Counted from the first letter of the stretch, positions 21,876-58,545 are shown. The stretch is 64,000 bases of DNA from Macrostomum lignano (GCA_002269645.1 NIVC01000392.1:310001-374000), one strand, 5' to 3'. Notes: generated from the sequence alone by a model not told the origin. Numbers and translations: made by a program.

Positions 21876-22322
21876 ACACATGGTGATTCTCGCACTATGA
21901 GCGTACATGTACCTATTAGACAGCAACCAAGTTATTTCGGCGCAAATATATTTATTATTTATTTAAAAGTTGTAGTTGACTGCATGAGCGGTCATCTGCT
22001 TTCAGCTTGTTCGGGCATACAGAGAGGAGTGGCGCCATAGCCAACGAAGTTCACTGCATGGCGGTCCTCTTGAACTCTCTGTTTTTCTTTCTTTTTTCGT
22101 CTCTATCAAATAGAGATGGTTTTTTGGCTATTTAATCATGTGACATCGTGTGGGCTTGGGTCTGCCTTATTAGCCATTCGTTTTGCTAAAATTTGGGCGT
22201 CATCAGTTCATCCGACGGGCTGGGCTATTTTTAGCAACATGTTGCCCACTCAACACTTTTAAATTGCAAGCTTAGGCTACTCAATTGATCGCTCAAAAAG
22301 TACATAAATGATAGGATAGTAA

Positions 22323-30000: not shown

Positions 30001-33000
30001 GGATTCCCCAATTATTGAACCGGATTCCCCAATTATTGACTTGGATTCCCCAATTATTGAATCGGATTCCCCAATTATTGAATCGGATTCCCCGATTATT
30101 GAACCGGATTCCCCAATTATTGAATCGGATTCCCCAATTATTGAATCGGATTCCCCAATTATTGAACCGGATTCCCCAATTATTGAACCGGATTCCCCAA
30201 TTATTGAATCGGATTCCTCAATTATTGAATCGGATTCCCCAATTATTGAATCGGATTCCTCAATTATTGAATCGGATTCCCCAATTATTGAATCGGATTC
30301 CTCAATTATTGAATCGGATTCCCCAATTATTGAATCGGATTACCCAATTATTGAATCGGATTCCCCAATTATTGAATCGAATTCCCCAATTATTGAATCG
30401 GATTCCCCAATTATTGAATCGGATTCCTCAATTATTGAATCGGATTCCTCAATTATTGAATCGGATTCCCCAATTATTGAATCGAATTCCCCAATTATTG
30501 AATCGGATTCCCCAATTATTGAATCGGATTCCTCAATTATTGAATCGGATTCCCCAATTATTGAATCGGACTCCCCAATTATTGAATCGCATTCCCCAAT
30601 TATTAAATTGGATTCTCAATAAATAAATTGGATTCTCCCTTTATTAAATTGGATTCCCTTATCAATTGCTTGGATTCCCTAAGTACTGAATTGGATTCCC
30701 CATTTATTAAATTGAATTTTCCAAATATTGAACTCGATTCCCTCTTTATTAACTTGTATTCTCCCGTATCGACTCAAATTTCCCCATTATTGACACGGAT
30801 TCCCTAATACCAAATTTAGGCATCTTATTCTTTCATTCCAACCCAAATTCCCATAATAAACAGGATTCCCCCATTCCAACTGAGATTCCCAGTTCAAATT
30901 TGTTTTATTTTATCTTGTTCTAAAGGGATTCCCCGATCCCAAAAAAAGAATTCCCCTGTCTCAAACGTGATGATTTGTCATTCCGCAGGCTGGAGGAGAA
31001 ATTCCTGTCTCTCTGGGGCAGCTCAGCGGCCCGGTTCCAGACGGTGCTGTGCGACTACCTCACCTTGCTCTTCCGCCACCTGTCCGCTCACGACTACGCC
31101 GAATTTGAGAGTCCCGAGCAATGGCAGCTGCTCAAGCAGGAGGTGTATAATATCTTTGGAGACGACGATCGGTTCCGTTCGGTGCTGCAGACCCTCGCTC
31201 AGTTGGACCGACGCAACGACCCGTCGAAACGCGGCTCGAGGAAGCGAGTGCTGCTCAAAGAGGCTGAAATTGTGCAGCTGAGGAGCCTGCTGGCCAAGCT
31301 GGAGTCGCACATCAAGTACTGGGAGTCGTTCCGTCGCCAGTCTCTGGCCGTGCGCGGCTCCGAGTACTGGCTGACTGAGCTGGACTGCTCCAAGCCTGAG
31401 CTGCATAATTCCATCGCTCTGCTAGAGTGAGTATTGAGCATAGTTTTGGATGGTGTTGAGCAGCAGTTCCTTCATCAAGTCCGCAAACAATTTGCATTTA
31501 CAAATAGTCAGCTCTCAGATGATTAGCAATTACATACATCTCGAAATCAATCATCAATTATTATGTCAATCAATCATAAATCAACAAATCATCAATCAAT
31601 CATAAATAAAAAATCAGTCATCAATCATCGATCAACAAATTAATGAAGAAATCATCAATCAATTTCCAAGCAATCATCAATCAATCACGAATAAAACATC
31701 AATCGATAAATCAATCAAGAAATCATCAATCAATCACCAATCAATCATCAATCAATCAAAAAACCAATCAAGCAATCATCAATCAATCAATAAGTTATCA
31801 TTATCAACCAATGAGCTATCAATCGTCAGTCAACAGCCATCAAAGATGCATAATACATCACCAGACAGTCGGTAGCAACCCATCTAGCCAGCAATGCAAT
31901 CGCTATTCCGCAGGACTCTCCAAGCCAGCGGCCAGGAGCAACTGGAGTCGCTCTTCGCCAAACTGAACGCTTGGCGAGCTGGCCAGGCTGCCGAACAGCG
32001 CCGCCACGTGCGCAAGCTGCGCCGCCAGGAGGTGCTGATGTCCGCTCATGCGGCTACCGGCGGCGACACTGTCGCGGGGCTTCTGCAGTTCCAGCTGCCG
32101 TCGCAGCGTGCCCGTCAGTCCGAGTTCAACGAAGCCGCCGCTGCCGGCCTACGACAGGCGGGCGTCGACGAGGCCCGCTGGAGCGAGCTGTCTTCGGTAG
32201 CCTCGTCCTCCGCCCGCGAAAGTGTCGCCGACAACGTCGTCGGTCGCCAGTGGCTGCAGCAGCACTCGCGCGGTCTGCAAACTACTCAGGCCGGCACTCG
32301 CGAGGCGGCGTTGCAGACTACGGAGCGCAGCGTCGGCCGCCGGGCGGAGCACGGCATCCAAACGCAAATCGCGGCCAGCCAGCAGCATCACGGAATTCAG
32401 ACTGGCTTCGCCACGGCCGACTCGAGCGTTACAGCGCAGCAACCCTCAGCTATGGAGCACGGAATTCAGACCGTGGGAGTCGGCGGTGGCTTGTTGAGTT
32501 CGGCGGTGTCTCAGCGCCTGGTCACGGAGCACTCGGGTAGTCAGTTCGACAGCGAGCGGGCGGACCACGGCGTTCAGACTCGGTACTCTACCAGCGACAC
32601 GCTAATGCTGAGCACACGGCTGCCAGCCACCCAATCGGGCAGTCAGTACAGCCAAGTCGAAGGTCGAGAGCACGCCATCCAGACGATGCCGGACTCCGGA
32701 GAGGCCAGCGCGTTCTTTCAAGTCGCGACGGAGGAGCAAAGCCTGAGCCAAATCGACCACGCCATCCAAACGTCTTGGGCGCTTAAGGACACCGCTTTGG
32801 AGTTCTCTGGACCAAGAATTGTCGAAATCGACTTGGACGAAGACTGGCAGACGGAGGAAAAGGTGCGGGCGGTGAGTCAGCCGGTAGATGCTACGGACAG
32901 CGTCAATTGGCTGAAGCACCTGGATACGGAGGAGCTCCGAGCTGAACTGCAGCAGAGGCTCATCCTCAGAGACAGAAGCTGCCAAGCAGGTTTGCAGACC

Positions 33001-36000
33001 CGCTCGCGCGACACCGACACGCAGTTCGTCATATTTCAGTCGGACAAAGACTCGACGGCTGTTACCGACTCTAGCACTCAGGCGTCGGCTCTGACCACGG
33101 AGGGTCATACGCAGTACGTTTTGTTCAAGTCGGACAAAGACCTGTCGGTCATGCTAGAGCCAAAAATGCGAGACGCCGGCATGCAAGTCTCTCGGACGAT
33201 GACAGAGGGTCAGACTCAGTACTTGGTGTTCCAGTCAGACAAAGACCTGACGGCCTTGATGAGTCCAAAATTGAGAGACGCTAGCCAGCAAGCTTCTAGA
33301 GTCACTACCGAGAGTCAGGCGCAGTATGTGCTCTTCCAATCGGACAAAGACCTATCGGCGCTAACAACGAGCGACACTCGAGACGCCAGTCTCCAAGCAT
33401 CAACCCAAACCAGAGAAGGCCACGCGCAGTACCTCTTGTTCCAATCGGACAAAGACTTGAATACATTGCTTAGCCCGGTGAAAGATGCCAGTCAACAGGC
33501 CAGCCGATCCACTACAGAAAGTCAAGTTCAGTACGTACTGTTCCATTCAGACAAGGATTTGTCGACACTACTGACTCCGACAGTTAGAGACGCCAGCCTG
33601 CAAGCGTCTAGCACAACTCAAGAACACCAGGCACAGTATATATCTCAGCAGTCTGATAAGTACATGAGTACTAATTTGGCACCGACTGTCAGAGACGCTA
33701 GCCTGCAAGCGTCTAGCACAACTCAAGAACACCAGGCACAGTATATATCTCAGCAGTCTGATAAGTACATGAGTACTAATTTGGCACCGACTGTCAGAGA
33801 CGCCAGTCTGCAAGCGTCGAGCACAACTCAGGATGGGCAAGCGCAGTACATCCTATTCAAATCTGACAAGGACCTGACCGCACTCATGACTCCGCAGCTG
33901 AGGGAAGCGAGCCTGCAAGCTTCTACTAGTAGGCAGACAGCGGACAGTCAGGCCCAGTACATTCTCTTCCAGTCTGACAAAGACTTATCGACAGTGTCCA
34001 CTACAACAGTCAAAGACGCTACAATTCAAGCAGGAGCTAAATCGTCAGACACACAGACGCAGTTTGTCCTGTTCCGATGCGACGCAAGCGTTAAGCCAAC
34101 GGTCGATTCCAGAGACTTCAGTGCCCAGGTAGAAAGTCGCACAGCTGACAGACAAGCCCAGTACGTTCTGGTCCAATCGGACAAGGATGTTAGCGCTCTA
34201 ACCGCCAAGAGAACTGCTAGCGTGAGCCAGCAAGCCAGCACGGAAAGCCGCAGCTCGCAGTATCTGCTGTTCCAAGCCAGCAAGCAGCTGTCTGCTTTCG
34301 TCGATTCATCGACTGCCGAAACCCAGGCTAGAGCTGAATCCTCGGACAAGGAGACCCAATTCCTTCTGTTTAGTGCAGAAAATTTGAGAAGCACAAAATC
34401 AGCGACTCGAGAGTCTGAGACGCAGTTCGTGCTATTTGAGTCAAGCCCAGAATTGTCGGCAAAACTGATTGGACGAGATGCACAATCTCAGACGTCAAGC
34501 AGAATGAACCACGAGTACGTTGTGTTCCACACACCGCGTGAAGCCACGGCAATGTCAGCGGCATCGACTGTCCAACAGACAGACTCGGAAGCGCAGTACC
34601 AGCGGTACAGTGTCGACCGACAAGACCAGACTACAACGAAGACTGTATCAGATGTTCAGACTCAGTTCATTCCTAAACTGATGCGTGACTCGCAAGGCGG
34701 CTACTGCCTCGCGTTGAACCAAGCAGATGCACTGATCCAAGGCAAATCGGTAAGCGAGGCCGAGGCGCAGTCCTACCTCACCCGCATGGTTGATGGCGTC
34801 GTTGTCGCTCGCGTGTCCACTCCAGCGACCAGCGACTTCCAGCAGCAGGTTTCCGAAAGTCGCCAGCAAGCCGGAGGCCTCAGAGATTCGGAATGCCAGT
34901 TTAAGCTGTTTTCATCGGACAAGCAGGTCGCCCATCGCTTTACTAGCAACGTTTCGCGCGAGACCACTACGGATGAAACTTTTTCAGAGTTCGAAATTTT
35001 CCAAAGCCAGCCAAAGCTAACTAGGGCTCAACCAAGGCTTTTAAGAGATTCCAGCGGTCAGTATTTCCTGACCTCAACCGCTCAGGGAACCAATCCGATT
35101 GCTGGAAAAGTAATTGCAGATTCTCAAGTACAAACCGCTCTGCAATCGTCCGAAAAGAATATTGTTGCTAGAGTAACAGAAGAGACTGTTGTTCCACTAA
35201 CTGCGGCGGCTAGTCAGACAGCCTTTTCTGGCGAGGCCAAACCGAGCCTTTGCGAGATTTATACACAGTACGACTTGCTCACCCGAGACGAAAGCTTAGC
35301 CGCTAGTTTCGGCTCAGCCACAGCTGAAGCATCGACTCAGCCTCGAGCTACTAGCGATTCAACAGCGCAGTATGTGGTGTTCAGAACAGACAAGTCGAGT
35401 GCAACCGGCAAGCCAGATCTGCGCCAGATGGCGATCAACACCGAGGTGACACTCCTGAAGGACTCAAGCGGACAGTATTTCCTTGGAAGCACTGATGGCT
35501 CGGTTGTTGTCCAAGGCACCCCTGTCAGTCCAGGCCAAGTTGTGCAACATCTAACCAGCTCTGAGAAGAACATTGTTGTTAAAGTAAGAAACGAGAGTGC
35601 CGCAGTGAAGGCCGACGGCAGCGGTGCCCTGAAAGACGTTTCCAGTCAGTACCTGATGTATTCTTCGGACAAGGATGTAGGCGCCGACATGGTGAAAAGC
35701 TCGATGAGTTCAGCGCAGAAGGTCTCCTCGCAGTCGATGGCGGTATTCCAACCAGCACTATTGCGCGATAGCTCCGGCCAGTACTACCTGACCTCTGCCA
35801 ATTCTAACGTTGCAGTTCAAGGCGTTTTCGTGACAGAATCACAGGCTCACCAACACCTGGCCAGCTCGGAAAAGAATATCGTTGCGCGAGTTGAAACCGA
35901 ATCGCGGGACTTCTCCGGCCAGACGGTGCGCATTGCAGACACGAGAGATTCGAGCAATCAAAGTGAAAAAACCCTGGCTGAAGTTGACACTCAGTACATG

Positions 36001-39000
36001 CTTTACACGTCTAATAAGAGTTTGGAGGCGGATACTCCACGAGAGAGTCCCAAAGACGAGTCCAGCGCCGTATTCAAATCGAAACTGATGAAAGACAGCT
36101 CTGGACAGTACTATCTCTACAGCTGCGACTCAAACGTGGCGATGGCTGGAAGAAAGGTTACCCAATCGGAAGCCCAGATGTACCTGACCTCGTCAGACAA
36201 AAACATTGTGGTCCGTGTCCCTGAAGAAAAGAGCGACTTTTCTACCCAAACGCTAACGTTAATGGAGTCATCGTCGGCTCGCAAAGAAGCTGAACTTCGT
36301 AGAAGCAACGAGCAGAAAGAATCGCAGACGCAGTACGTGCTATTTTCTTCAGACAAAAGCCTGTCGGCTGATTTATCCTCCGATGTGATTGTTCCGTCTC
36401 GAGACACTGCCGATTACGCCGTTCCCCGACTAATGAAAGACAGCTCGGGGCAGTACTATTTGTGCAGCGCCGATTCGAGCGTTGCAGTGGCCGGTACACC
36501 GATAGCCGAGTCTCAGGTTAAACAGCATTTGGCGAGCTCTGACAAGAATATAGTGGCTCGCGTTACTGCCGATTCAAAAGATTTCTCTACTCAAACTGAC
36601 CAGCGGTCAGCGTCGGTTAGAAAGGCTGAAAGCGAGACGCAGAGTGGCCAACCGCTGGCTGAAATGCAAACTCAATACGCGTTGTATTCATCAAACAAAA
36701 GCGTAACTGTAGACTTCAGCGCCACTTCGGAAGACTTTTCAACGCAGACCAGGTCAAGTACGGCCGAAAGCAGCGCAGTCAGGTTTCCAGTGGTGATGCG
36801 CGACAACTCCGGTCAGTTCTACCTGACAAGCGAGGACTCGAGCGTTCGAGTTCAGGGCCAAATTGTCACAGAGTCGGAGGCTATGCACCAGCTCAATACT
36901 TCTGAGAACAACATTGTAGCTCGAGTGATTAGTAAATTCAGAGACGTCACGTCTCAAACTGCTCAGGAAGACAGCAGACGCGAGTTGATTTCCAGCGAGC
37001 AGCAGTACGTCCTTTATTCGTCTAACAAGTCGCTAGCAACTGCGGACGTAAGAAGCTCGGAAGAGTTTGGCACCCAAGCCAATTTAGATTACTCTGATGC
37101 GGCAGTGTCGCAGGCCAAACTAATGAAGGACAGCTCTGGGCAGTTCTATCTGGTGAGCTCCACTGCAGGCGTGGCGGTGCAGGGCCAGTCACTGACGGAG
37201 GCTGAGGCGCAGTACTACCTAGCTACTTCTGAGAACATAGTTGCTCGAGTTTCAGATGAAGGAAAAGATTTCTCGACTCAAACAGCGTCTCTCGCTCGCC
37301 CCGTTAAAAAGGAGAGTGGAACGCAGAGCGGCACAAATGAACTCACAGACGTACACGCACAGTATGATCTATTCTCATCTAGCAAGAGCCAAACAGCTGA
37401 ATTTGTTAAATCTTCTGAGGATTTCGCCACGCAGACCAAAATGGTCAGCGTTCACAGTGCTGCGTCAAAGCCAAGTCTCCTGCGAGACAGTGCAGGTCAG
37501 TACTACTTGACGAGTCAGGATTCTGCCGTCAGAGTTCTAGGAAAAGTTGTGACTGAGTCTGAGGCGCGGCATCACCTCAGCACATCGGAGAAAAGCATTG
37601 TGGCGAGAATCGTCGGCAATGCTCGAGATTTCACTACCCAAACTGTTGCCACGGAAGAGGAAATCGTTGCAGAACGGCAGCAGTACGAGTTGTACTCCGC
37701 AACTAAAGACTTGTCCATGCTAGCTAGTAGCAGCGAAGATTTTTCGGTGCAAGTTGATGGTGACTATGCCGACGCAGGCAGCCAATACCAGCCGAAGCTG
37801 ATGCGAGACAGCTCAGGCCAATACTACTTGTCCAGCGCTGACAGTAGTGTGATCATTTCTGGCAAACCGGTTACGGAATCCGACGCTAAGAACTACTTGG
37901 CTACTTCAGAGAGAAGCATTGTTGCAAGAGTCAGCAGCGATACTAGAGACTTTACAGTACAGACGCATCAACCACAAGTCCTGACTCTAAGCAAGCTGCC
38001 ACACAAAGCGGCTCTACTCTTTCAGAAGTGAACACGCAGTATTCTCTTTACTCGTCTAATAAGAGCATTACAGCGGATGTACATGCAGTAAAGACCTCAG
38101 AGGACTTTGCCACGCAAACAAAAACAAGACTAGCTGAAAGCACCTTTGCTCAATCCAAGTTAATGTGCGACAGTGCCGGACAGTACTACTTAGCCAGTGC
38201 CGATACTGGAATGATGGTTCGTGGTCAAGTCGTCTCCGAGACCGAAGCTCAAAGCCATCTGTCGAGTTCCGAAAAGAGTATAATAGCCAAGGTGGTAACA
38301 GAAACACGCGACGTTACATCGCAGACTGTTGTTGAAAGTAGTACCTCAAAAACACGATCGACTCGTGGACCCCTGCGGGACGTCCAGAGCGAGTTCGTGC
38401 TGTATGCATCAGACAAAGGTTTATCAACAGATATTGCCACTGGGGAGTCTGTGGCGGTGTTCAGCCAGACAGTTGATGCTCAAGATGAGAGCGCTCGCGT
38501 TCAGCCGCTCGGTAAAACAGCCAGTGCCTTGGCCGGTTCTCGGGTCATGGTTGATTCCAGCGGGCAGTACTACCTCAAGACAGCAAACTCTGCCACTCTT
38601 GTTCCCGGTGTTGTTGCCTCTTCGTCGGAGGCCGAAGCGGCGCTGGAGAGTTCGGATAGCAGAATTGTAGCTCGGGTATTCGACGAAAAGTCGGACGTTT
38701 CCTCACAAACTGTTTCCGCAATAGCTTCAGCTCAGAGCGTGAGTACAACGAAAATGAGGGATGTCAGTACTCACTACGTCCTCCTGGCGTCATCGCACAA
38801 TGCGTTTAGCCAAACTGAGGAAGAAGTCGAAACAATTGTGCAGGTGGAGCAAGCACCTCTAAAAATGGAACCAACTGAGCAAGTGAACAAAAGCACGCAA
38901 GTTGTTTCGGCCATGCAAGACACCGATGCCCAATTTTTCAATGCTAGCTCCAGCACCTTCGGTATTCAGACAGAAAGATTCGAAGCCACTGGCCATGTGC

Positions 39001-42000
39001 AGGTTGGCTTGGAGACCCAGTTTGAGAAACCGAGGGCTGAAATGATAGATTTCCAATGCCAGACGCACTCTGCTCCGACCATGAAGGAGTCCGCCTGCGG
39101 CTTTGCGCCAAGTGCTTCTTTAAATAACAGCGTTCAAACTGTGGCTATGGACAGCGAAAGTGAAAGTTTAATCGAGTCAGGCTTTCAAACTGAACGCTCA
39201 ATGGATGAGGCGGATATTGCTAGAAGCACGCAGACCGATATTAATGTTATAGTGAAGCCGAACGCTCAGGAGAGCCAAATGAAAGTGAAGACAACTGTGC
39301 AATCCGATTTATCAAGCCAGTTTGATCCCGAGCTGAACGAATCCAGCTTGCATTACCACGCCCGAGGAGAAGACTTCAGCTCACAGGCCGCGCCACAGCT
39401 GATTTCAAAGCGAGTACAGCTCGGAGTACCGTGGAATTTCTACTCCGACTCAGCCATTCAGACAGAAGAATCGTCATCAGATGAAGACAGCTTAACTGAC
39501 CAAACGGTTAGCAGATTTGAGCAAGACTGTCAAACAATGTTCATCTGGAGTTCGAGCGAAACACAGACCGATCAGCTGCTAATTGAAGACACGGAAGAAG
39601 AGACTGATATCGAGCCGGAGACAGCTGTTCAAGTTATGGCCGTGCAGCAGCGTGAAGGAATAAATAGGGCTTGTCAGACTGGCAAAACTGAGAAGCGAGA
39701 CGTCATGTCGGCGTACTATGCCTGTGCCGAGGTTAGTGTCGTGGCTAAAGAAGTAGAGAAAGACTTAAAGTCGGAATCGGTTCGTGTTGCTTTAACGACT
39801 CAAGTGGAGCATGTCGGCTAAAGAAGTAGAGAAAGACAAAGTCCAGACTCAAGTGGAGCATGTCCTGCAACCAGCAAACGCCTTTCTTATCAGGACGACA
39901 GCCTGTTGTTTAGAAGCCAGTGCCCAGAGTGCGCTCGTCGTGGCAAAGTTAGTATAATTGAATCGCAGACCCAGTACTGGTCCCCTCTGCTTGACAGAGC
40001 CGCGCAATATGACCAATCTAGCGATGACAAGAGCCTTCAGGTTCTGTTTACTTCTGAAAGCCCAAAAACTATAGAAAAAGGTTTTAAAGCTACCCAGCCA
40101 AAAGAAACAGCTGATGCTTGTGTCGTGGCACTGGACTACGACTACCAGAGTCTGGAGGTTGTGTGCCACACATACGAGAGCCTTGTTGCTCAACTGTCAC
40201 AGAAAGTCTCAGATCTAGAGGCAGCCGCAAATAGAGTAGGCTTAGAGGAGCACGTGCGTGTCAAACCGTATCAAAAAGCAAAGCGAATCCAAAAAGGAAC
40301 ATCGGCTTTCAATCTAGCCGAGATGTTTGTCCAGACCGATCCGGCTGAGGAACCGGAGGTCATCCGGGAGGTCGTCCAGCTGCAATCAGCGCCAAAAGCC
40401 GACACAGAAAACATTGAGGTCCAGACGCAATCATTTTTGCAGGATGCGATCATCAAAGTGGACACGACCACACCTGTCGAGAAGGAGGTATCCGATTCTG
40501 AGGTAAAAGCCAGAGTAGAAATGCAAGAGCTATCAACTGGCTTTGGTGTTGCTCATGAGGATACAATCATCAAGGTGGACACGACCACACCTGTCGAGAA
40601 GGAGGTATCCGAATCTGAGGTAAAAGCCAGAGTAGAAATGCAAGAGCTATCAACTGGCTTTGGTGTTGCTCATGAGGATACAATCATCAAGGTGGACACG
40701 ACCAACCTGTCGAGAAGAAGGTGTCCGATTCTGAGGTAAAAGCCAGAGTAGAAATGCAAGAACTATCAACCGGCTTTGGTGTTGCTCGTGAGGATGCGAT
40801 CATCAAGGTGGACACGACCAAACCTGTTAAGAAGGAGGTGTCCGACTCTGAGGTAAAAGCTAGAGTAGAAATGCAAGAGCTATCAACCGGCTTTGGTGTT
40901 GCTCGTGAGGATGCAATCATCAAGGTGGACACGACCAAACCCGCTGAGAAGGAGATGTCCGATTCTGAGGTAAAAGCCAGAGTAGAAATGCAAGAACTAT
41001 CAACCGGCTTTGGGGTTGCTCGTGAGGATGCAATAGTCAAGGTGGACACGACCAAACCCGCTGAGAAGGAGATGTCCGATTCTGAGGTAAAAGCCAGAGT
41101 AGAAATGCAAGAACTATCAACCGGCTTTGATGTCACTCGTGTGCACAAAGTTATTCAGTTGGGCTCGCCATTTTCGAACCGAGTCGAAAACTACTGTAAT
41201 ACAGATCAAGTCGAGGAAGTAGAAGTTCAGGTGCGCCATGTAGAGTCTACACCCCGACCTGAACTGGCCGATGTAGGTACTCAGTATCAACAATCTCAAT
41301 ATGAAAGCGTTGGAATTCAAGCTCGTCTCTATGAACCGGTTGTGACATCTCCGACTACTGGGCCAGAAAAAGAATTCGCAGAAACGAAAATGGAGTTTGG
41401 CGTACGGATGAAAGATATTTCGACGACGTTCGATGCAAACCTTGACAATAAAGTGTCGCAGTATGGCTGCTCTTTCTTCAGATTGGTTGAAACAGGTACT
41501 AATACCGAAGATGAAGAGGTGCCAGTTCAAATTCGCTTTGTAGAATCTGCGCCACTTACTGAAAAAGTCAGCATCGCAACTCAATCGCACCGATCCTTGA
41601 TGCTGGACAGAGAGACAACATTTAAATCAGAATCTAAGCATAAGGTGATTCAGCACGGTTGCCCCTACTTTATGATGGTTGATGGCGACTGCAATACCGA
41701 ACCGCTAAAGGCGGAAACAATCGAAATTCCCGTACCATTGGTTGTTAGCAAGCTCGATGAAAACGTCGGCACTCCAGAAATCACCTGGAAATCAAAAGCA
41801 ATTCAACGAGGCTGTCCATCGTTTGCCGTTCGCAACGTTGCTTCAAACACGGAGAATTTCGAGACTGAGGACTACGTCGAATATGGATCCTACGATCAGT
41901 ATGTGCTCCCGGAGACTTTAAAAACTGCCGAGTACTCAGATGCAATGGTGAAGGCAAGCATAAAAGCAGATCTTCACCGAAAAGCTATTCAGCATGGATG

Positions 42001-45000: not shown

Positions 45001-48000
45001 TCGCTCACGCTCAAGAAAACGAAAATTACCAGAAGTCTCTACTCAAACGGAATTCGTTGAAGAAGAAGTTAAGGAAACGTTTGAAACAACCATACACGAG
45101 TGTACACCTCCTAGGGTTGACCCGGCTGATCAGGAGGTTAAAAAGACGTCACAGATGAGGACGTCAGTATTCACAGCTGAAGCACACGTTCAATTTGAGC
45201 CTGAGGATTCGTGCAATGCCTTGGTTGTGGCTCGTCTTGAAACAAAAGTACCGCACGAAGAAAGAAAGGAAAATTCTACCGAAAGGGAAGTTCAGACGGA
45301 AGGAATTCTCACAAACAGTTCGGTTCAGTTTGAAGGTCATGCAGAGCCAGATGAACCTCAACAGGATGCAGTGGATGATCTGTACACGATTATAAAGGTC
45401 GAAACAAAAGATTCTTCATCCATGCCGGATACCGACTACGCTAACGCTGCGGTTCAGTTCGATGGCGAGGCAGAGGTCGAAACGTGCACAGCAGAAGTAA
45501 GGACTGGAGCTAATACAAATGCAGCAGAGGTTCAAACAGTTGTGTACTGCATTGATGCAGAGACAGAATTCGAGCAAGAAGAGCGTGTTGAAGAAGTTTT
45601 TCAGCAACAAGTTGTTACACTGGAACAGTCAGCTCCTCGCAATGATGTGCTGTGCCAAACCGGCGAGTTTATGGAGGATTTCGGCTCAGGCTATAGCGTG
45701 GAACGCCGAGAGTTTGGAGTTGAAAATGTCGTTGCAACATGTGAACAACTCACACAGTGCGAACAGTTGCAACAGTCGGACAAAGGTATTATAACTGAAA
45801 GTGTATTAACAGACTATGGTACCCAGCTTGAAATAGATGAACCCGACGCTGTCGTGAAGAAGCCAGAATCAAAAGAAGCCGTGACTGAGTGCACTATCGA
45901 AAAAGACGAGGCATGCGATCAAACCGACGTATTTCTGAAAAATTCGACTGCGCAGTACGAGTTGAAGACAACGGAAATTGCTTGCGTCAGAACCCAGGTT
46001 GAAACTGCCGACGCTGCGACTGAGTACGACCAAGACAAAGAGGAGCCAGTAGTACCAACTCAAGTTATCATTGAAGAGTCGGTACCGAGAATTGATGCAC
46101 AATGTCAGACACGCAACGACATGGAATGCTTTGGTACAAGTTTCGATAGCATTGTCATGGAGGAGGTGTGCGTTAAAGCCAACCTTACTGTTGAAAAGAA
46201 ATATGAACTGTAGGCGTCAACCAAAAGCCTTCGATAGATTCAGCTTCAACCTGCTGTGAATGCGAAATCGACGATGCCTGTGCTCAGACTGACGAAGAAA
46301 AGAAGAGTGAGATGCGCGATTCGATTGCTCAGTATGAGTTGTCTACGGAATTCGAAAGCATCCAAACCCAGATTGATACCGCAGACGCTGAGACTGAGTA
46401 CGACCAAGGCGAAGAGGAACCAGTAGTACCAACTCAAGTTATCATTGAAGAGTCGGTACCGAGAATTGATGTACAATGTCAGACACGCAACGACATGGAA
46501 TGCTTTGGTACAAGTTTCGATAGCGTCCCTAGCCAGGAGGTGTGCGTGCAAACTAGCGTTACTGTTGAAAAGGAATATGAAACTGTGGGCGTCAACCAAA
46601 AGCCTTCGATAAATTCAGCTTCAACCTGCTGTGAATGCGAAATCGACGATGCTTGTGCTCAAACTGACGAAGAAAAGAAGAGTGAGATGCGCGATTCGAT
46701 TGCTCAGTATGAGTTGTCTACGGAATTCGAAAGCATCCAAACCCAGATTGATACCGCAGACGCTGAGACTGAGTACGACCAAGGCGAAGAGGAACCAGTA
46801 GTACCAACTCAAGTTATCATTGAAGAGTCGGTACCGAGAATTGATGCACAATGTCAGACACGCAACGACATGGAATGCTTTGGTACAAGTTTCGATAGCG
46901 TCCCCAGCCAGGAGGTGTGCGTCAAAACCAGCGTTACTGTTGAAAAGGAATATGAAACTGTAGGCGTCAACCAAAAGCCTTCGATAGATTCAGCTTCAAC
47001 CTGCTGTGAATGCGAAATCGACGATGCCTATGCTCAGACTGATGAAGAAAAGAAGAGTGAGATGCGCGATTCGGTTGCCCAGACCCAGAGTGAAACCACC
47101 GACGCTGAGACTGAATACTACCATGACGAAGAGGAACCTGTAGTACCAACTCAAGTTATCATTGAGGAGTCAGTGCCGAAAACTGATGCTGAAAGTCAGA
47201 CACGCAACGACATGGAATGCTTTGGTACAAGTTTCGATAGCGTCCCTAGCCAGGAGGTGTGCGTGCAAACTAGCGTTACTGTTGAAAAGGAATATGAAAC
47301 TGTGGGCGTCAACCAAAAGCCTTCGATAGATTCAGCTTCAACCTGCTGCGAATGTGAAATCGACGATGCCTGTGCTCAGACAGACGAAGAAAAGAGTGAG
47401 ATGCGCGATTCGATTGCTCAGTATGAGTTGTCTACGGAATTCGAAAGCATCCAAACCCAGATTCAGACCACAGACGCTGAGACTGAGTACGACCAAGGCG
47501 AAGAGGAACCAGTAGTACCAACTCAAGTTATCATTGAAGAGTCGGTACCGAGAATTGATGCACAATGTCAGACACGCAACGACATGGAATGCTTTGGTAC
47601 AAGTTTCGATAGCATTGTCATCGAGGAGGTGTGCGTTAAAGCCAACCTTACTGTTGAAAAGGAATATGAGACTGCGGGCGTCAACCAAAAGCCTTCGATA
47701 GATTCAGCTTCAACCTGCTGTGAATGCGAAATCGACGATGCCTGTGCTCAGACTGACGAAGAAAAGAAGAGTGAGATGCAAGATTCGATTGCTCAGACCC
47801 AGAGTGAAACCACCGACGCTGAGACTGAGTACGACCATGACGAAGAGGAACCTGTAGTACCAACTCAAGTTATCATTGAGGAGTCAGTGCCGAAAACTGA
47901 TGCTGAAAGTCAGACACGCAACGACATGGAATGCTTTGGTACAAGTTTCGATAGTGTGCCCAGCCAGGAGGTGTGCATTAAAACCGACTTTACTGTTGAA

Positions 48001-51000
48001 AAGGAATATGAAACTGTGGGCGTCAACCAAAAGCCTTCGATAGATTCAGCTTCAACCTGCTGTGAATGCGAAATCGACGATGCCTGTGCTCAGACTGACG
48101 AAGAAAAGAAGAGTGAGATGCATGATTCGATTGCTCAGTATGAGTTGTCTATGGAATTCGAAAGCATTCAAACCCAGATTGATACCACAGACGCTGAGAA
48201 TGAGTACGACCAAGGCGAAGAGGGCGAAGAGGAGCCTGTGCCGACAACTCATGCACAATGTCAGACACGCAACGATATGAAATGCTTCGGTACAAGTTTC
48301 GATAGCGTCGCCATGCACGAGGCTTGCGTTAAAGCAGCCGAGCCAGTGCCAGAGAAGACTGACGCGTCAACACAGAGTGTTGTTCAGTGCCAAATGGAGA
48401 GCTCGTCGGGCACTGTTAACTATATGGAAGACTATGGTAGCCAAGTTGATCTGGTGACCAATAGCATCGCTACGCAAGTTGAGAAGCAAGCAACGACTGA
48501 ATCAGCTATTCAGATCAAACTTGAAAAGACTACCGAAGTGACTGAGTTTGGAACCCAATCAAGAAGCTTTATGGTGGATTCATCGAGTCAAATTTTAGTT
48601 GGCACGACCGATAGTTTCACGCAGAGTAAAGAGGTAGATAAATCCAGTATTGGCGTCACTGCTGACTTTTCTAAGGCGCCAGAATGCTCCGAAATTGGTA
48701 CACAGTCGAGAAGCTTTATGACTGAAGAAGGCTCTCAGCTCTCCGTGCATGCAACTGAAGCGGGTACACAGTGCGAACTGTCGAATATCGAGACTGGTTG
48801 CGTAAATGTAGGCGCCGAAATGAAAACCTGCACTACTCAATGCATCTCCGAATCAAATGAATTTGGCACTCAGCATCGAATTGATGTATCCGAAGCAACT
48901 ACACAGAGCCATAGTAAGCCTGTCTGGGAGAGCTCAGTCTGTGTTAACTTGATTCAGAGAAAAGAAATGACTGATCGCGGCGCTCAGTGCCGAAACAATC
49001 TAATTGAGTCTGGCTCCCAGCATGGCTTGAAATCTGTAGACATCGACACCTTGACTATGAGCAGAAGCACTGCTGAGGCTTCCGTCACAGCGGAATACAT
49101 CGAAGAAGCAGTCGAAGTGGCAGAGGAAGCAACTCAATCACGACAGGTTATGTGTGACGAAGGGTCTCAACTGCTAGTGCAAGTAACAGACGTCTCCACC
49201 CAGTATGAGGCCGCCATCAAGTGCAACGCCGCAGTCAGAATAGCCGAGATTAAGGTTACCCAGTCGGTTGGATGTCAGAAAGAGACTCCAGTAGTCGATG
49301 AAAACGAGCAGTGCTCTACTTCGCTAACTGACTCAGGCACTCAACAGTCGTTTGAATATATCACTCAGTCCATAGTAAGTCCTCGACTTGAACAAACTAG
49401 TAGCTCCATGTCAGCCAGGTGCAGTTCAAGCGATTGCGGGACGGAAACACGTCCTCTTGGAATAGAAGCCGGCACAGAGTACTTAATGGAGAGCACTGAC
49501 TCTGGGGTCAGCAATTCTAAGAAGGCAGTTAATAGCAGCATGCAGATAGTAACTCTTATTAGTCAGAAGGACCAAGAGATCCAAACTGAGACGGAAGATA
49601 CAACAGATGGATCGGATGTAGAAGAGAAGATTGAGGAATCTAAATGCCACCACGAAACTGTAGAAATTATTGAGGAAACGACTTCAAAGTCTGAGAAGCC
49701 AGTCTACTCTGAAGGAGCATTTGTGTTAAACCACAAGCGGAAGATGCAAGCTGCCAGCATGAAGAAGAGCCATCTGTTCGCTTGGTAACATCTGTGACAC
49801 CTGCTGTGTCTGGCATGAACTTTTCTTATCAACTTCCCGTTGAGACCACCCAGACGTGTCGGGTTCCGATGATAGACTCGACGACTCAATACCAATCCGA
49901 ACTTTACGAATCATCGATGGCGTCATTCTGTTCGAAGGTCCCCATGGAAGAGCAAGGCTGTCAGACAGGTGGGGAGAGCATAAACAGTTTCGCTCGAACG
50001 CGCACCGAGATGGTTTCGACAGAGAGCTCTTACAAACTGGAGCGAGCGGAGGGCTTTGCCAGAGCATTCATTAGTACAGCTGACGCAGAAGTGAAAAAGC
50101 TACTGTTGGAATCCGAGACCATCGATATGAGCACGGAAACTGAAGTTCGAGTGAATTCAGTGCAAACATCATATGCATTGGTTCTGCAGGACGCTGGTGT
50201 TCAAATAGGTAAACAGTATGCCGACAGTGAAGTTTATGTCCAGCCTGTCGAAGAAGAAAAACCGGACCTGGCTGTGTCTGGCATCGCTGTTCGAGGACCT
50301 ACCAGCTCAGTACAGACAGCTTACGACTTGTCTTTAGATGACGCTGCTACCCAAGTGTCTACCGAGCTATTGAATTCCAGTGTGGTTGTGACGCCAACTA
50401 TCACAGAGACAACCGAAATCGAAATAGAAACGAGTTCGCACATGCAGTCTAGCGAATCCTCCTACGATCTGGATACAAATTCAATCGGCATCTTGTGTTC
50501 ATCTGAGTTAGAGAGTGTCGATACCCAAACCATAACTGATCGGAAAGATGCAGAAATGATGACGGAATCCGAAGCCAAGAAAGAATATGACAATAGCAAT
50601 ATGCAGCACGCTGAACAGAGAAACAATTTCGACGCTAGCACTGAAACTGAAATTAGGAAGCGCTCGGTTGAAAGTCAGTACATCCGCGAGCTGGCTAACA
50701 GTGAGACGCAGATTGCTAGCGAAACCTGCGATACTTCCGTCTGGGTGCAAGAGATCAAGGTAGAAACAACTAATGCCTTGACGGAAACGGCTCCGAATAT
50801 GGTAGAAGTAGAAACTAGTTACAATACTAGTATGGCGTCTGTTGATTGTCAGTCTGGCGTAGCTCACGCTAATGCCAACATCCAAGCCTTGGAAGTTCAG
50901 CCTGAGACAACAGACTCAAGCATTCAAACAATGGACGCAGACGTGAACGAATTAGCTGCGCAGACAGAGGCAGCTGCAATCTTAGAAGATGCCGTTGTGG

Positions 51001-54000
51001 CTACCAAAGTCGATACCAAATCGGACGCCTCATTCTTTTCTGTACCCCTTCAGGACGGCAGTACGCAAGCTAGTCGCGAATTTGACAGTGCCGGAGTAAA
51101 AATAGCCGAGACCCCAGTTGAAAAACTCGACGTCTCAGTAGAAACGAAAATCAATGCCAGAGAGGTGTCCGTACAAGCCTCTAGCGAATCGATGAGTGCG
51201 AACGTCTGGGCAGCAGAGGAGCCCATTGAAAAGGAAATCGCTTCAGTTCAAACGAGCAGCAGATTGGATTCGTCTGAGACGCAGTATAAGCTGCTTGTTG
51301 ATGATTATGAATGTCAGGCCTCAGAGGAGGCTGTCATCACAGTCGATTCATCCATTCGGGCTGTTGTTTCATCAGTTTCGGTGGAGACACTGTGCGAATT
51401 AGGCTTAGTTGACAGTTCCTCCCAAGCAGCCGTTGATTTAGTCGACGCTTGCGCTCGCGCTGAAGAGGAGCCTATAAAGAAATCCGAAGCTTCCTCGGAG
51501 ACTGCAGTCCGCAAGCAATCTACTGAAACTATGTACCATTTAGAGCAGCAAGATTCTTCTGTTCGAACATTCACTGAGCAGCAAGACGCTTCTGTGCAGG
51601 TAGAGTCAGAAAGAATCGAGTGTTTGGAGGCGTACACGGAAACACAGCCGAAAATGCGCGAGGTCGAAACGGATTTTACTGTCCCAGTGAACTCCGTTCA
51701 ACTTGAGGCGACCATTCCAACCAAGGATGACAACATGTCAGTCAGAGAAGCAGTTGTTAAAACTAACGATGCAGCGATCGAAACTAAAGTATCTGTGAAA
51801 TGTGTTGAAGTGCAAGCATGCCCTGACTACACCGAATCGGATGCTCAAGTTCACGAGACTGTCGCTGAAAAGGCTGAGGTCACAACTGAAACAGTGCGAA
51901 GAATGGTCTCAGTTGAGTCCTCATACTCTGTGAGCGTCCAGTCCGTGGGAACTTCTTCCACAGAAACCAGCACAAGCGACATGGCAACCCAAGTGAAAAT
52001 GAATATTTCTGATGTACAAGTCCAGACTGAGGAGGAAGTTATTAAATCTATCAACTCAAATGTGCAGATGCACGTCGATACTAACTCTTGTGAGACATCG
52101 TATAGCCTGAGAACGGTTGAAAGTTCTACTCAGGCATCTACGGAAACGGATGAATCCTTAGCGAAATTCGAAGAAGAAGTCATCGTGACAGAAAAGACTG
52201 ACGCATCCACTTCTTACAGCCTGCGAACTAGCAACAGCGAAGTTCAAGTCTCTTGCGATCATTCTGATGTAAGTGTGCAAATTGAAGAAGCAAAGATTGA
52301 AACGTGTGAAACTTCAATCAAGGCGGAAGTAAGTACAAAATCGGTGGAAACTGCGTACGTGATGAGATTAGCCGATGTGCAATCACAGGCTTCTATGGAT
52401 CAATGCGATGCAAGTGTCAGGATTGCAGAAGAGGCTGTAAAAACAGTTGAAAGCAGTTGCATGACAGAGAGAATTCTTGTTTCAACATTGTCGCTGTACC
52501 ATATCCCAACTGAGCACACTGGCTCCCTAGCATCTACAGAGTATAGTGACGGGGATGTGCAAGTTGAAGAGTGTAAAGTAGAACTTGTGGTCACTGGTAT
52601 CGCTGTTTCAACAGCGTCTGTAAGTGACAGCCAGGTTCAAACCGCTGAAGTGTATACTACCTCGAATGTTAAGGCAGTGGAGCCAGTGCCAGATAAGCTG
52701 GACGCAGCTATAGCAGCTACCGTTGAGATGAAGTCTACTGACTCATTATACTACCTCAGACTGATGGACTCCGATTCTCAGGCATCAACCCAATCAGACA
52801 ATGGGTCAGTACACGCCGAAGAGGCTATTGTTGAAAGGCTAGACGCCAGCGCTCAAATCCAGGCTGACTGTCGCACCGTTGAGACATCCTACGAAATCAG
52901 ACGGAGCGACTCGTCCTCCCAAGCATCGGTGGCCTTCGCAGATAGCATCTATATTGTAGACAAAATCGAGCAAGTTAACAGCTTTGTATTAGCAACTGAA
53001 CCGGTGAAATCTACAGCGGAGAAAGAAGTGGACGTGAAGACTCAGACTGAATCAACTAACATGAGGCACCAAGTGCCTTCTCTCGATGGTTTTGTTCAAC
53101 CATTAACTGAGTATTGCGACTCCGACACTTTTATTGAAGAAGTGATTGAAGAGATCCGAAAGCCTAAAGAGGAAGCGAAAATGAAATCAAAAACTGTGGC
53201 CAGCTTCTATGAGGTTCGAGTTGAGAGCAGAAGCGCGCAAGCTTCAACCGAAACTGATGAAGTCACTGTGTTGCACCGAGAGCTCAAGCCTGACCTTATT
53301 AATAGTGATATCAAAGTCTCTGCTTCTACAAAGACCGCAGACGCGCAGTACGGTTTGCGGTTGAGCGACGGAGAAGCACAGGCTTGCATTGAACTGTGTA
53401 ATTCAAACATGAAGTTCGAAGAAAAGATCATAGCGATCGAAAAGTTGGATGCCGCCACACTTTGCACCGGTCCGACAATGGAGCAAGGTGGTGTTAGAGC
53501 TACTCCATCTACAAAGGCCACAGACTGTCAGTACGGTTTGAGACTGAGCGATGGACAGACACAAGTTTCCAACGAGCTATGTAATGCTAATATCCAAATC
53601 GAAGAGAAGATTGCTGTGATTGAAAAGTTGGATGCTGCTACTCTCTGCACCGGGCCAAGAGTGGAGCACAAAGCAGTCCACATGTCAACGCAACAACTCG
53701 ATCAGAGCATCCAAGCAACGGAAGAAAGGCCTCAACAAGTGGAGAGTGGAATTAAGGCCAGTGTAGTGACAGCAACTGATTCTGGAGTGCAAGTTTCCGC
53801 TTCAGTCTCAAATGCAAACGTTCAGTTTGCAGAAGAGATTGTGGTTATAAAAAAATGTGACGCAGCAACGACATATAGCCGTCCAACTGGCGAGAGAGAG
53901 GTGCAAGTTTCGAGTGATCAATGTCACGCAAACGTGCAAGTTCACGAAGCAGCAATCGAAACTGGCGAGGCTTCAGTCAAGGCAGCAATTAGTACAAAAT

Positions 54001-57000
54001 CTGTTGAAACAGAGTACACTTTAAGACTGATAGAGAAGAACTCTCAGGCGTCGATGGATGTGGACAATGCGAATGTCAGGATCGCTGAAGAATCCATAGA
54101 GACAGCAGAAAGCAGCTTTAAGTCACAGAGCAGCCTCGTGTCCACCTCATCCCTGTACAATATCCGTACTGAGCACAGTGAAGTTCAGGCATCCAAGGAA
54201 TTCACTGAGACAGTAACACATGTGCAGGAAGCCAAAACTGAGGTTGCTGTTAGCGGAATCAGCGCTGCAGTCAGCACGGAGACAGTTGAAACAGGATACT
54301 CTATCAGATTAGCTGACGCACAGAGCCAAGCATCAGCTGACACAAGCGAGACAAGCGTCCAAATCTCAGAAGAGTCTGTCGAGACAGACGAATACAGTTT
54401 CAAGACGCAGAATAGTCTGATTTCAACTTCGTCACTCTATGCTATCAGAACAGAACACAGCCAATCTCAAGCGTCGAAGGAGTTTATCGATGGAGCCGTT
54501 CAAGTCCAGGAAGCTAAAATCGAAGTAGTTGATAGCGGAATAAAAATTTCAACAGAATCGCACGAGGCCTGCGCTATCTTTAAGGAAGAGGTTGCCAAAG
54601 CGCAGGATACTCGAGAAGTACAGGCGTCATTTGAGAAGCTCGATGACCATGTTTACGTTAAGGAATCGAAGACACAAACAGTCCAAAGTGAAGTTAAAGC
54701 AGCAGTTGATACCAAATCTGTCGACACTTCTTACGGCCTTCGCCTATCTGACAAGGAGGTTCAAGCTTCCAGAGAATATTGCGAAGTTGATGTAAAAATC
54801 AAGGAAGAGGCAACTGTCAAGAAGACATCGGATGCTTCGACCTTATACAGTCTGCGCACAGAGCACGTAGAAGCGCAGGCTTCAAAGGTCTATCAAGACG
54901 ACAGCCTGCAAATAAAAGAAGCGATGGTTGAGTCAGTTGACGGAGAAGTCAAGTCTGAAGTGAGCGCCCGGTCAACAGAGACACTATATTCCTTGAGACT
55001 GGCTGATCAAAGCTCACAGGCTTCAATGGAGCTAAACAACTCGAGCGTCAAAATTACGGAGGAAGTTGTGGAGACTCGAGAGAATAGTTTTAAAACACAA
55101 AGCAGCTTGAGATCAACTCATTCTTTGTACAACATCCGCACAGAGCACAGTGCGTCTCAAATTTCTCGCCAGTTTGTAGATGCAAACGTGCAAGCGAGAG
55201 AGTTATCAAGGGTTTCTATGATTCCAGGCAGTATGAAAGCTCGCGCAGTGTCAGTCGTCAGCAGTCAGATGAAAACGGCAGTTAAACTGACAGACTCGTG
55301 GGTAAATGTTTCTTCATCCAGGGCAGGTTTCAGACCAGAGGCCCAGAGCAGGGCGACTCAAATCGATCAGGGTGATTTCATTGAGATTGAAGAATTTCCC
55401 ATGCAGCAAACGACTCAAAGATTTGAGCATGCCATTCCAACGGTCAATGAGTCTAGTCAAACAGACGAAATCGAGTTTGAAACATCCGGGCGCCCTGTAC
55501 AGCATCCACACCTAGAAGACGTTGGAGCAACATTTGTACCAGACTCCAGGGCAGTCAGCTGTCAAATGACTGTGCCTGTTGTAGAGAACGGAATCTTCCG
55601 CAACACGTCCAGCCGCACACTTTCAACTCAAGTCGAGTTTTTCGATGTTCCGGACGGCGCCCCTCGATCTCCGAGTGTTCGAAGCAGTCACCGCCACAGT
55701 CACAGTCATTCAGTTTCTAGAGACACAGGCAGCCTTCTTGAGATCGTGTCTAAAAACCAAATTATACGATGCGCGCCAAATTCTGCCAATGCTCTGGTGG
55801 TAACCTCGTCGCGAGCGAAAGACTCCGGTTCAATTCACTTTCCTCGCGAAGAGGACAGCGAGCAAATCCAGGAGCAACAACTGACAGGTGCTCAAACCTC
55901 CGAGCTATTCCCGCCGCGTCACGGCTTCGTGGTAACCGGAGCCAAGTCGAGTCTGTCAGAGGAGGCTCAGGTCAGACAGGAGGTCGCTAGGCGTGGCACT
56001 TCCAGCGGTACGGATACGCACGGTCTGGTTGATTCCGCGCACAAGCAAATCCGAGTTCGACCTGATTACTACGATGCCAATGTAAGAAGCGCGTATCCGA
56101 CTGAGCTTCCAATGCAGCAGCAGCAGCAGCAGCAGCAGCAGCCCAGGCGGACTCTTGAAGCGGCGTTTGCCATGACTGATACAGACGTGATTGATCGCGT
56201 CAGATCCAGCGCCTCTCCGCAGCTGCGCTTGGCCCTGCTGCAGATGCTTCGGCCAGCAACAAGCGACGCGTCGACGGATGCCAAGTTGATTGGAGCGGAG
56301 CAGCAGCAGCAGCAGGAGCCGGAAATGCTGCAACAATTGCAACAACAGTACCAACAACCAATCCAACGAACTCAGGCGCCTTCGACATCATACGTGCAGC
56401 GACAAAACATGGAGACTAGCAGCCAGACGGACCGGCTTACGGAGGCCGATTTTGAGGCTTGGGCGTCGCAGAGTCTTGGCAGAAAAGTCCGCATTAGTCT
56501 TGAGACGCCAGAAGAGTCGCGGTGAGCGCTTTAACGTCTTTTGGGTGCTTTGGGGGAAGCATTGGTTTGAAGTATTTTGCAGTAAAATATCGAATCAAAT
56601 TAGAAAGCTGTATAAGAAAAATCATAAATGAGCCTCAATTTTTGAATTTCACCGAACCGCGGCACCGTCTAGCCGGCTTGAAATGCTGTACGGCCCAAGC
56701 GGTAGCCCAGACCATCTACCGAGGAGTTGGTAATTAGTTAATCTAGATTTTAGATATCACTATATCCATTTTTCTATCCAATTTCTATATAATTGGCGTA
56801 AATTCAAGTTAAAGTATATAGCTTAAAAACTTTTCCTTCACTATTTTTTCAATTACTATCACACCCAATCTTTTTATGCTACTAATAACGTGAAACTGTC
56901 TCAAAACTCAATGGCTTACTAAACATGTGTGTAGCTTGTCATTTCCGCTGCTGAAAATCTGAAACAAAAAAATTCTTCATTCGACTGGCTCTCCATCCCT

Positions 57001-57993: not shown

Positions 57994-58545
<552 letters not shown>

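Follow-up and report, generated by a model that had tools for sequence, protein, structure and literature searches.

Candidate LC8-binding motifs in the 24.6-kb repeat exon of a giant Macrostomum lignano plakin-family gene

Does the long repeat-rich coding region in a 64,000-nucleotide stretch of the flatworm Macrostomum lignano (GCA_002269645.1 NIVC01000392.1:310001-374000; the whole stretch is called the window here) encode a rod held together by LC8, the dynein light chain? An earlier sequence-only reading had proposed that 32300-56430 is packed with TQT-like words at which LC8 could join two chains, the resulting rod standing in for the plakin coiled coil. This interval is contained in a single exon, 31915-56525 (+), which is the 24.6-kb terminal exon of a giant M. 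lignano plakin-family cytolinker gene. Its repeat families all derive from one ancestral unit of the form D-x-x-[T/V/I]-Q-[T/Y/A/V]-x-x-x-[L/M]-x. Usually two or three such units follow one another, and repeats built on this 11-residue glutamine (Q) unit take the position of the coiled-coil or spectrin rod of other plakins. We give an even chance to a giant plakin with an extended acidic tether, in which LC8 sites are a subset at most and not the organising principle.

The gene and its terminal exon

The exon is represented by six long open reading frames (ORFs) on the + strand between 31894 and 56525 (2,045, 597, 277, 1,830, 1,158 and 2,247 amino acids (aa), with changing frames). When five or six small breaks are bridged, 8,202 codons without a stop are obtained (31915-56522), followed by TGA at 56523-56525. 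The ORF junctions look like small assembly-type defects and not like introns (Table 1). The sole database relative of the first ORF is the M. lignano protein BOX15_Mlig027648g1 (P0001; 2,730 aa, 97% identity), recorded as 'Desmoplakin SH3 domain-containing protein'. Its first 444 aa map onto window exons 24049-31427 (tblastn against the window), and because of this the gene is 24049-56525, with a product of about 8,650 aa. The public gene model ends at 2,730 aa, less than one third of the predicted protein, and leaves two thirds of the exon without annotation.

The family assignment is carried by the upstream exons. Pfam SH3_10 is detected there at E 1.2e-10 (passing the curated cutoff), and phmmer aligns the domain with desmoplakin (3R6N, E 1.1e-13) and plectin (3PE0, E 4e-7). 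The hallmark of the family, spectrin repeats with an embedded SH3, is present and, as judged from these matches, the upstream exons encode a true plakin domain. A separate protein search with the plakin domain returned no match, not even P0001, and was hence uninformative. Literature searches on Macrostomum and plakin, on LC8 and plakin, and on the locus tag returned nothing relevant.

Neither a coiled-coil nor a spectrin-repeat rod was found in the terminal exon: Pfam assigned no spectrin or other family to 8,154 aa (all six ORFs gave sub-threshold noise only), and a crude composition screen limited helix- or coiled-coil-type composition to exon aa 0-100, about 300-350 and 8050-8150. The last of these segments is short and Q-rich, contains a polyglutamine (polyQ) tract and is, besides the N-terminus, the only place whose composition allows a short dimerising coiled coil. 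Of the idea that the plakin coiled coil has been replaced, the presence of a plakin domain and, within this crude screen, the missing coiled-coil rod are borne out; the LC8-zippered rod is unsupported. C-terminal plakin (plectin) repeats are likewise not found (PF00681 absent at E<=1, with no PDB-sequence or Foldseek support), and no CH-domain exons were detected in the DNA that separates the first plakin exon from the acyl-CoA dehydrogenase gene upstream of it. Further downstream exons were considered and rejected: the stop overlaps GGTGAG, yet no coding ORF occurs before the minus-strand channel gene.

The genomic locus of P0001 is a second copy of the gene, NIVC01003053.1 (L001). Exon identity between the window and L001 amounts to 99.3%, against 88-95% for introns and upstream DNA. 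In 12.7 kb of aligned exon we counted 31 synonymous and 26 nonsynonymous differences (ratio of nonsynonymous to synonymous rates, dN/dS, roughly 0.27); on this ratio the exon is under purifying selection. L001 has neither the window break at 37980 nor the insertion at about 39816, but carries its own, different 1-2-bp deletions. Since the two copies do not share them, the breaks are most plausibly assembly errors or lesions of very recent origin; the 42-nt insertion with its TAA is either a misassembly or a truncating allele. Over 31915-45818 the copies differ at about 0.7% (synonymous ~1%), over introns and upstream DNA (22300-31750) at 5-12%, a contrast that may be due to gene conversion, strong constraint or repeat-driven misalignment of the flanks.

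TQT-like words and the 11-residue unit

All words quoted in the sequence-only reading were recovered from the + strand translation at the multiplicity it gave: EHGIQT (2), DHAIQT (1), DFSTQT (4), DFATQT (2), DFGTQT (4), DACAQTD (5), TSSQTD (1), and RSTQTD, SETQTD, VSTQTE and DSAIQTE (1 each). Their general form [DE]xx[TIVCA]QT occurs at 49 sites (32347-54663) against 3.2±1.7 in global and 100-aa local shuffles alike, TQT 22 times against 5.5 in shuffles, and [TIVS]Q[TV] 109 times against 40. Under harsher controls (column shuffle of Q-centred octamers, reversed sequence) the enrichment is still about 2-3 fold. The description of the words as 'often 10-40 aa apart' was overstated: only 23% of gaps fall in that range and the median gap is 70 aa. 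Close spacing is mainly a property of the N-terminal cluster (gaps 29-36 aa); typical site spacing is 70-115 aa, which is not ladder-like. Similarly overstated is the label 'low-complexity sequence': what it covers is in fact at least 8 distinct tandem-repeat families.

For scoring we used a log-odds matrix from 79 validated LC8-binding octamers (Jespersen et al. 2019 Table S4, PMC6607443), with the composition of the exon protein itself as background and thresholds taken from leave-one-out binder scores. At the threshold reached by 75% of binders the exon holds 25 matches (1.45±1.3 in 100-aa local shuffles), at the 90% threshold 72 (8.6±2.9), so that motif scores lie well above a composition-matched background, as the LC8 proposal had required. 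The matrix separates TQT-containing non-binders poorly, as in the literature: 8 of the 32 pass the strict and 16 of the 32 the lenient threshold. Qualitative rules from the same source (an acceptable anchor; -4 not hydrophobic, -3 not small, -2 not aromatic, +2 not hydrophobic, no proline inside; PMC6607443) are all satisfied by 55 exon sites, and by 60/79 true binders.

One of the best candidates is KDFSTQTD (score 14.6; compare AMOTL1 KDSSTQTD and BSN AEFSTQTP), and others are IARSTQTD, SSSETQTD, KDQEIQTE, VDVKTQTE and four copies of EDFGTQT[IF]. Six candidate [TSC]NT[ED] sites (7 overall, against 1.1 expected) resemble the TNT anchors of KIBRA/WWC among the binder octamers, a table to which ATMIN contributes 10 motifs (PMC6607443). 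A hydrophobic residue occupies +2 at 19% of the LC8-like sites, all four DFGTQT[IF] among them. FoldIndex is negative at 62% of LC8 matches, against 50% overall. Conservation of the motifs offers little help: the protein searches that were run gave no homolog outside M. lignano, and between the window and L001 one of the 26 nonsynonymous changes falls in a motif where 2 would be expected, numbers too small for statistical power.

A different regularity emerges when all 646 Q residues are considered together. D stands at -4 in 22% of them, 3.5 times what composition predicts. Position -1 favours T, V and I, and +1 shows an excess of Y (3.8-fold) and T (1.9-fold). A Q-Q spacing of exactly 11 is found 95 times against 52 expected (z 6.4), and spacings of 10 and 12 are not enriched. 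Alignment of the Q-pairs yields D-x-x-[T/V]-Q-x-x-x-x-[L/M]-x as the unit: every repeat family has D again and again at -4, +7 and +18, and L or M in positions -6 and +5. It can be read in the 35-aa repeats (RDASLQAS...QAQYVLF, whose two Q residues sit 11 apart), the 115-aa repeats (KDSSGQYYL...SSVAVQG), the 76-aa repeats (DFGTQTIEYCCDIEVQC), the 49-aa units (EFGTQSRSFMVDSSSQILVGTTDSFTQS) and the 47-aa C-terminal units (DAQSQASADTSETSVQI).

Those copies of the unit that bear T or V at +1 are the TQT-like words. In most units +1 is Y, A, S or F, none of which is seen there in the 79 validated binders (0/79). D or E at -4 is commoner before Q-Y (71%) than before Q-T (53%), so it is not specific to LC8 anchors. 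Among 88 Q-pairs spaced by 11 (polyQ tail excluded), 52 have no LC8-type anchor and 11 have two. Column permutation among Q-centred octamers predicts 35 lenient and 10 strict matches (observed 61 and 23), and the reversed sequence gives 35 and 8 (forward 72 and 25). Because these unit-preserving controls retain so many matches, the generic unit yields a third to half of the LC8-like signal, and a 2-3-fold directional excess of LC8-like sites remains. Octamers that match the validated LC8 motif are thus present, though non-binders also pass and the controls alone give 35 (lenient) or 8-10 (strict).

In the N-terminal cluster, directly behind the plakin domain, the motif islands are conserved and the spacers of 13-40 aa share no sequence among themselves, for which reason it shows the typical pattern of a short-linear-motif array; on its sequence it is the best candidate for an LC8 array. 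Apart from this cluster, sites grouped by linkers short enough for a cooperative ladder were not found. Each 115-aa repeat consists of a 45-aa module (LMKDSSGQYYL...IVARV), D-F-[ST]-x-Q-T, a variable linker and TQYxLYSS[DN]KSL, and some copies add a second E-D-F-x-T-Q-T. In the alignment of these repeats D-F-x-x-Q-T forms an island (D 10/11, Q 10/11, T 10/11) within a linker that is rich in indels; also conserved is TQYxLYSS[DN]KSL, which does not resemble an LC8 site. We consider LC8 binding credible at a subset of sites, chiefly the N-terminal [DE]H[GA][IV]QT cluster and the DF[ST]xQT sites.

A related island, T-Q-Y-x-L-[YF]-S-S-[DN]-K-[SD]-L, recurs over 33040-38960, where it forms the core of the 35-aa repeats and no 115-aa repeat lacks it. 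Its conservation exceeds that of the TQT words, and it is not LC8-like.

Readings of the repeat region

Structure prediction bears on how the chain might behave. AlphaFold2 (AF2) was given one 115-aa repeat with its 12 copies as alignment. Residues 1-45 reached a predicted local distance difference test (pLDDT) of about 80-86, with a hairpin (9-12, 19-21) and a helix (27-36); DFSTQT, the linker and the TQY island stayed at about 50. For one 94-aa double unit of the C-terminal array, with non-overlapping double units as alignment, pLDDT was 49, without secondary structure. These alignments hold 12-13 sequences only, and the low pLDDT is weak evidence for disorder. The exon product is composed of 12% S, 10% E, 9% T, 9% V, 8% Q and 4.8% L, with a net charge of -0.08 per residue; FoldIndex is borderline (50% of windows predicted unfolded).

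Searches for relatives were largely negative. A hidden Markov model (HMM) of the 115-aa repeat found no homolog beyond the M. lignano paralog among 1.84 billion representative proteins, the corresponding profile had 0 matches to PDB sequences at E<=10, and the AF2 model had no Foldseek match in the PDB at E<1. The C-terminal 2,247 aa matched nothing in a collection of 5.8 billion protein sequences. The same HMM picked up two borderline bacterial repeat proteins (E about 1e-4) with FG-GAP-like 'SNGQWY' hairpins; in P0003, with FG-GAP/VCBS-like repeats ('FRPSNGQWYI...G'), the resemblance is to the DSSGQYYL hairpin module (E about 2e-4). It probably reflects convergence of hairpin sequences and not homology. 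Two further identities were tried and rejected. The consensus SDxxYK of nebulin modules is absent from the 35-aa repeats, in an exon without any Pfam family, and the 45-aa hairpin-helix module has neither sequence nor fold support as a divergent plakin repeat.

In the reading that we hold at even chance, the plakin domain would, by analogy to the rest of the family, attach the protein to a junction or another cytoskeletal site, and the 8,200-aa acidic repeat chain would be a tether or spacer of great length, extended for the most part and with small hairpin-plus-helix modules along it. About 25-55 units satisfy the LC8 rules and may recruit LC8 dimers locally, helping to pair two chains; the candidates are the six [DE]H[GA][IV]QT, about 14 DF[ST]xQT, a few [ST]TQT[DE] and six TNT[ED]. 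A number of observations weigh against this picture. The extended state of the tether is inferred from composition and low AF2 confidence, while FoldIndex is borderline with half of the windows unfolded. A spacer that is disordered throughout does not account for the sharp 11-residue spacing, which implies a constraint imposed by structure or by a partner. The flanks of LC8-type anchors suit LC8 modestly better than those of other Q units (D at -4 in 32% against 19%, D/E/P at +2 in 31% against 20%), and therefore some selection for LC8-like sites is possible. Finally, the window copy has an in-frame stop at about 39819, which is no simple homopolymer error.

That stop also belongs to what might be argued for a decaying pseudogene or assembly artefact, with real breaks and an untranslated repeat region: the window copy has five or six breaks, including the in-frame TAA within the 42-nt insertion, the public model ends at 2,730 aa, and the last 2,247 aa have no annotated protein match. 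Given that no more than these breaks occur across 24.6 kb, that none is common to both copies, and that dN/dS is about 0.27 with the exon much more conserved than its flanks, we regard this as very improbable. Marginally less probable still is an SQ/TQ cluster domain, in which the Q-words would be phosphorylation sites of ATM/ATR/DNA-PK-type kinases, an alternative that the sequence-only reading itself had named. [ST]Q is indeed in excess (187 against 139 expected), but SQ is not enriched (76 against 80), and the excess is made up of TQ (111 against 60), VQ (92 against 58) and IQ (41 against 25). Because VQ and IQ share the excess of TQ and SQ is flat, the preference is for beta-branched residues and not for phospho-acceptors. 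Kinases of this type act chiefly in the nucleus, and a plakin-domain cytolinker is, from its family, presumably cytoplasmic.

More weight has to be given to a self-folding beta-rich rod, although we think it improbable on balance. Here the 11-spaced D-x-x-x-Q strands would pair within or between chains as hairpins or meanders, forming a beaded or ribbon-like rigid rod in which the TQT words are merely strand sequence and LC8 is irrelevant. The exact spacing, the beta-branched residues flanking Q and the hydrophobic positions +5/-6 agree with it, as do the AF2 hairpin in the sole confidently modelled module, the high V, T and I content and a FoldIndex that is not clearly disordered. On the other side, AF2 leaves the 47-aa units and the linker/TQY part of the 115-aa repeat without predicted structure, Foldseek and PDB matches are missing, hydrophobics are few and the net negative charge is strong; the N-terminal [DE]HG[IV]QT islands among variable, unrelated spacers have the pattern of linear motifs and not of a fold. 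The hyper-multivalent LC8 zipper, which we judge unlikely, takes the same unit as an 8-aa motif plus a 3-aa linker, so that LC8 dimers, from dozens to hundreds of them, would bind cooperatively even at weak non-canonical units and turn two chains into a segmented rod in place of the plakin coiled coil. It draws on the 25-72 matrix matches, on the correspondence between the positions conserved within the unit (D -4, beta-branched -1, Q 0, T/V +1) and those that define the LC8 motif (PMC6607443), and on anchors (TQT, IQT, VQT, SQT, VQV, TQI, VQC, TNT) that all occur among validated binders. In addition, KANK1 L2 forms rods and binds at least 15 LC8 dimers; its motifs are non-canonical, individually weak and separated by 3-4-aa linkers, which gives a spacing of 11-12 aa (PMC12803091). 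AF2 gives most of our chain no autonomous fold in a repeat region without coiled-coil-type composition. Set against this are the 52/88 pairs without an LC8-type anchor (11 with two), the prevalence of Y, A, S and F at +1 (0/79 binders), a D at -4 that is not specific to LC8-type anchors, the prediction of DSSGQYYL as a strand of an intramolecular hairpin (pLDDT about 85), and LC8-like sites that lie 70 aa apart (median) with +2 hydrophobic in 19%. As most anchors are unused by known clients, the sites are distant and at least one unit type is predicted to fold by itself, the proposal that LC8 zippering organises the whole rod finds no support. In its extreme form the entire 8,200-aa exon would be a KANK1-type LC8 rod, segmented and micrometre-long with 50 to several hundred dimers, to which LC8, or a flatworm paralog with a roomier +1 pocket, binds cooperatively along runs of two or three units, weak non-canonical ones among them. 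This we consider less likely again, and keep it alive at low probability because of the KANK1 precedent (PMC12803091). The expansion of DLC-like families in flatworms that had been invoked in this connection is described for parasitic flatworms only (PMC4300400, PMC12347358) and is not known from Macrostomum.

Repeat families, flanking DNA and known systems

Coordinates of the features are collected in Table 1. The Cys-Pro motif in 41153-43850 has no Pfam match; the same interval holds four 76-aa repeats with EDFGTQT[IF]EYCCDxEVQC.

Table 1. Features of the plakin-family gene in the window, with the observations on which they are based.
Feature	Position	Strand	Basis or remark
Plakin-domain exons (spectrin repeats and SH3_10)	24049-31427	+	tblastn with P0001, Pfam, PDB matches
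Upstream exons, about	24049-24099, 25003-25128, 25227-25370, 28071-28436, 29392-29631, 30954-31427	+	
Giant exon	31915-56525	+	ORFs, junction inspection, stop-free stitched translation, 99.3% identity to L001
N-terminal motif cluster: six [DE]-H-[GA]-[IV]-Q-T and two LQT	32263-32775	+	words kept in P0001
About 14 repeats of 35 aa, x-Q-[AT]-Q-Y-V-L-F-Q-S-D-K-D-L-S...R-D-A-S-L-Q-A-S	33040-34600	+	tandem repeat finder, period 105
Twelve repeats of about 115 aa	34678-38960	+	repeat alignment, AF2
Frame break J1, C missing	37980	+	L001 and P0001 read through
Acidic non-repetitive stretch with isolated strong LC8-like octamers (VNKSTQVV, STFGIQTE, IARSTQTD, SDSAIQTE, SSSETQTD)	38883-39575	+	matrix scores 9.0-13.0
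Window-specific insertion of about 42 nt, partial duplicate with in-frame TAA	39816-39860	+	L001 uninterrupted there (...TTQVEHVDGAATSKRLSYQDD...)
Six 39-aa repeats (IIKVDTTKPVEKEVSDSEVKARVEMQELSTGFGVARED), without TQT-type sites	40441-41141	+	tandem repeat finder, period 117, 93% matches
Similar 1-bp breaks	about 40704, 46207	+	junction inspection
Thirteen K-x-[IV]-Q-[RHK]-G-C-P-aromatic units	41153-43850	+	six followed by [TSC]-N-T-[ED], about 13 aa on
About six repeats of 114-125 aa with DACAQTD, ESIQTQID, D[AV]QCQTR	45991-48138	+	tandem repeat finder, periods 375, 342
Units of about 49 aa, three successive 11-residue Q-strands, e.g. EFGTQSRSFMVDSSSQILVGTTDSFTQSKE	48350-49400	+	Q-pair alignment
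Fourth break	about 49727, exact position not fixed	+	junction inspection
About 35 units of 47 aa, S-V-E-T-x-Y-x-L-R-L-x-D-x-x-S-Q-A-S...S-V-Q-I-x-E-E	49950-55270	+	few LC8-type anchors
C-terminal non-repetitive tail, short helix/Q-rich segment and polyQ	55270-56522	+	(GCA)n at 56114-56142

The plakin gene is flanked by ORFs of DEG/ENaC type (amiloride-sensitive sodium channel, PF00858) at 11844-13298 (-) and 59898-60530 (-), with E 1e-43 and 5e-9. Its 5' end is bounded by the acyl-CoA dehydrogenase gene (AidB_N, Acyl-CoA_dh) at about 16700-19100 (+), which is annotated at the homologous locus (L001 213-3743). A satellite array with a period of ~20 bp lies at 20690-21880, and its counterpart in L001 (4222-7465) is roughly three times longer. 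Strand-skewed low-complexity DNA occurs at 2000-6000, 26000-28000 and 57999-58571 (GC skew down to -0.8) and includes an 877-aa ORF (2764-5397) without Pfam match and a (CTGT)n-type microsatellite, which is translated as 'CLSV' repeats.

If the conservative reading is true, M. lignano has a largely unannotated plakin of ~8,650 aa in which a plakin domain is coupled to a completely new rod or tether, which would be of use for flatworm cell biology and for annotation of the M. lignano genome. If LC8 does bind in the limited sense, at the six sites next to the plakin domain and the DFSTQT sites, this would be the first link between a plakin and LC8 (our literature search found none) and a test bed for the idea, derived from KANK1, that LC8 serves generally to dimerise and stiffen long disordered linkers.

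Among known proteins, the epithelial plakins without CH domains (desmoplakin, periplakin, envoplakin) share with the flatworm protein an N-terminal plakin domain, an SH3 within spectrin repeats and a long central region. The flatworm protein differs by having neither a coiled-coil rod nor detectable plakin repeats, and by an 8,200-aa lineage-specific Q-unit region; it is roughly three times the length of desmoplakin. A very large tandem-repeat exon joined to cytoskeletal anchoring domains is also known from the plakin-repeat exon of Drosophila Shot and from titin PEVK, with a presumed role as extended or elastic spacer. The repeat chemistry is unrelated, as the flatworm exon has no plakin repeats or any Pfam family. 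With the multivalent LC8 clients (KANK1 L2, ASCIZ/ATMIN, Nup159, Chica, Bassoon) the likeness lies in the many octamers that fit LC8, with D at -4, a large residue at -3, a T/V/I-Q-T/V anchor and D/E at +2: xEHGIQTx resembles 53BP1 NNIGIQTM and nNOS KDTGIQVD, and some pairs are 11 aa apart as in KANK1. Compared to the linkers of 3-30 aa in those clients, site density in the flatworm protein is low (median gap 70 aa) and the sites are a minority variant of the unit.

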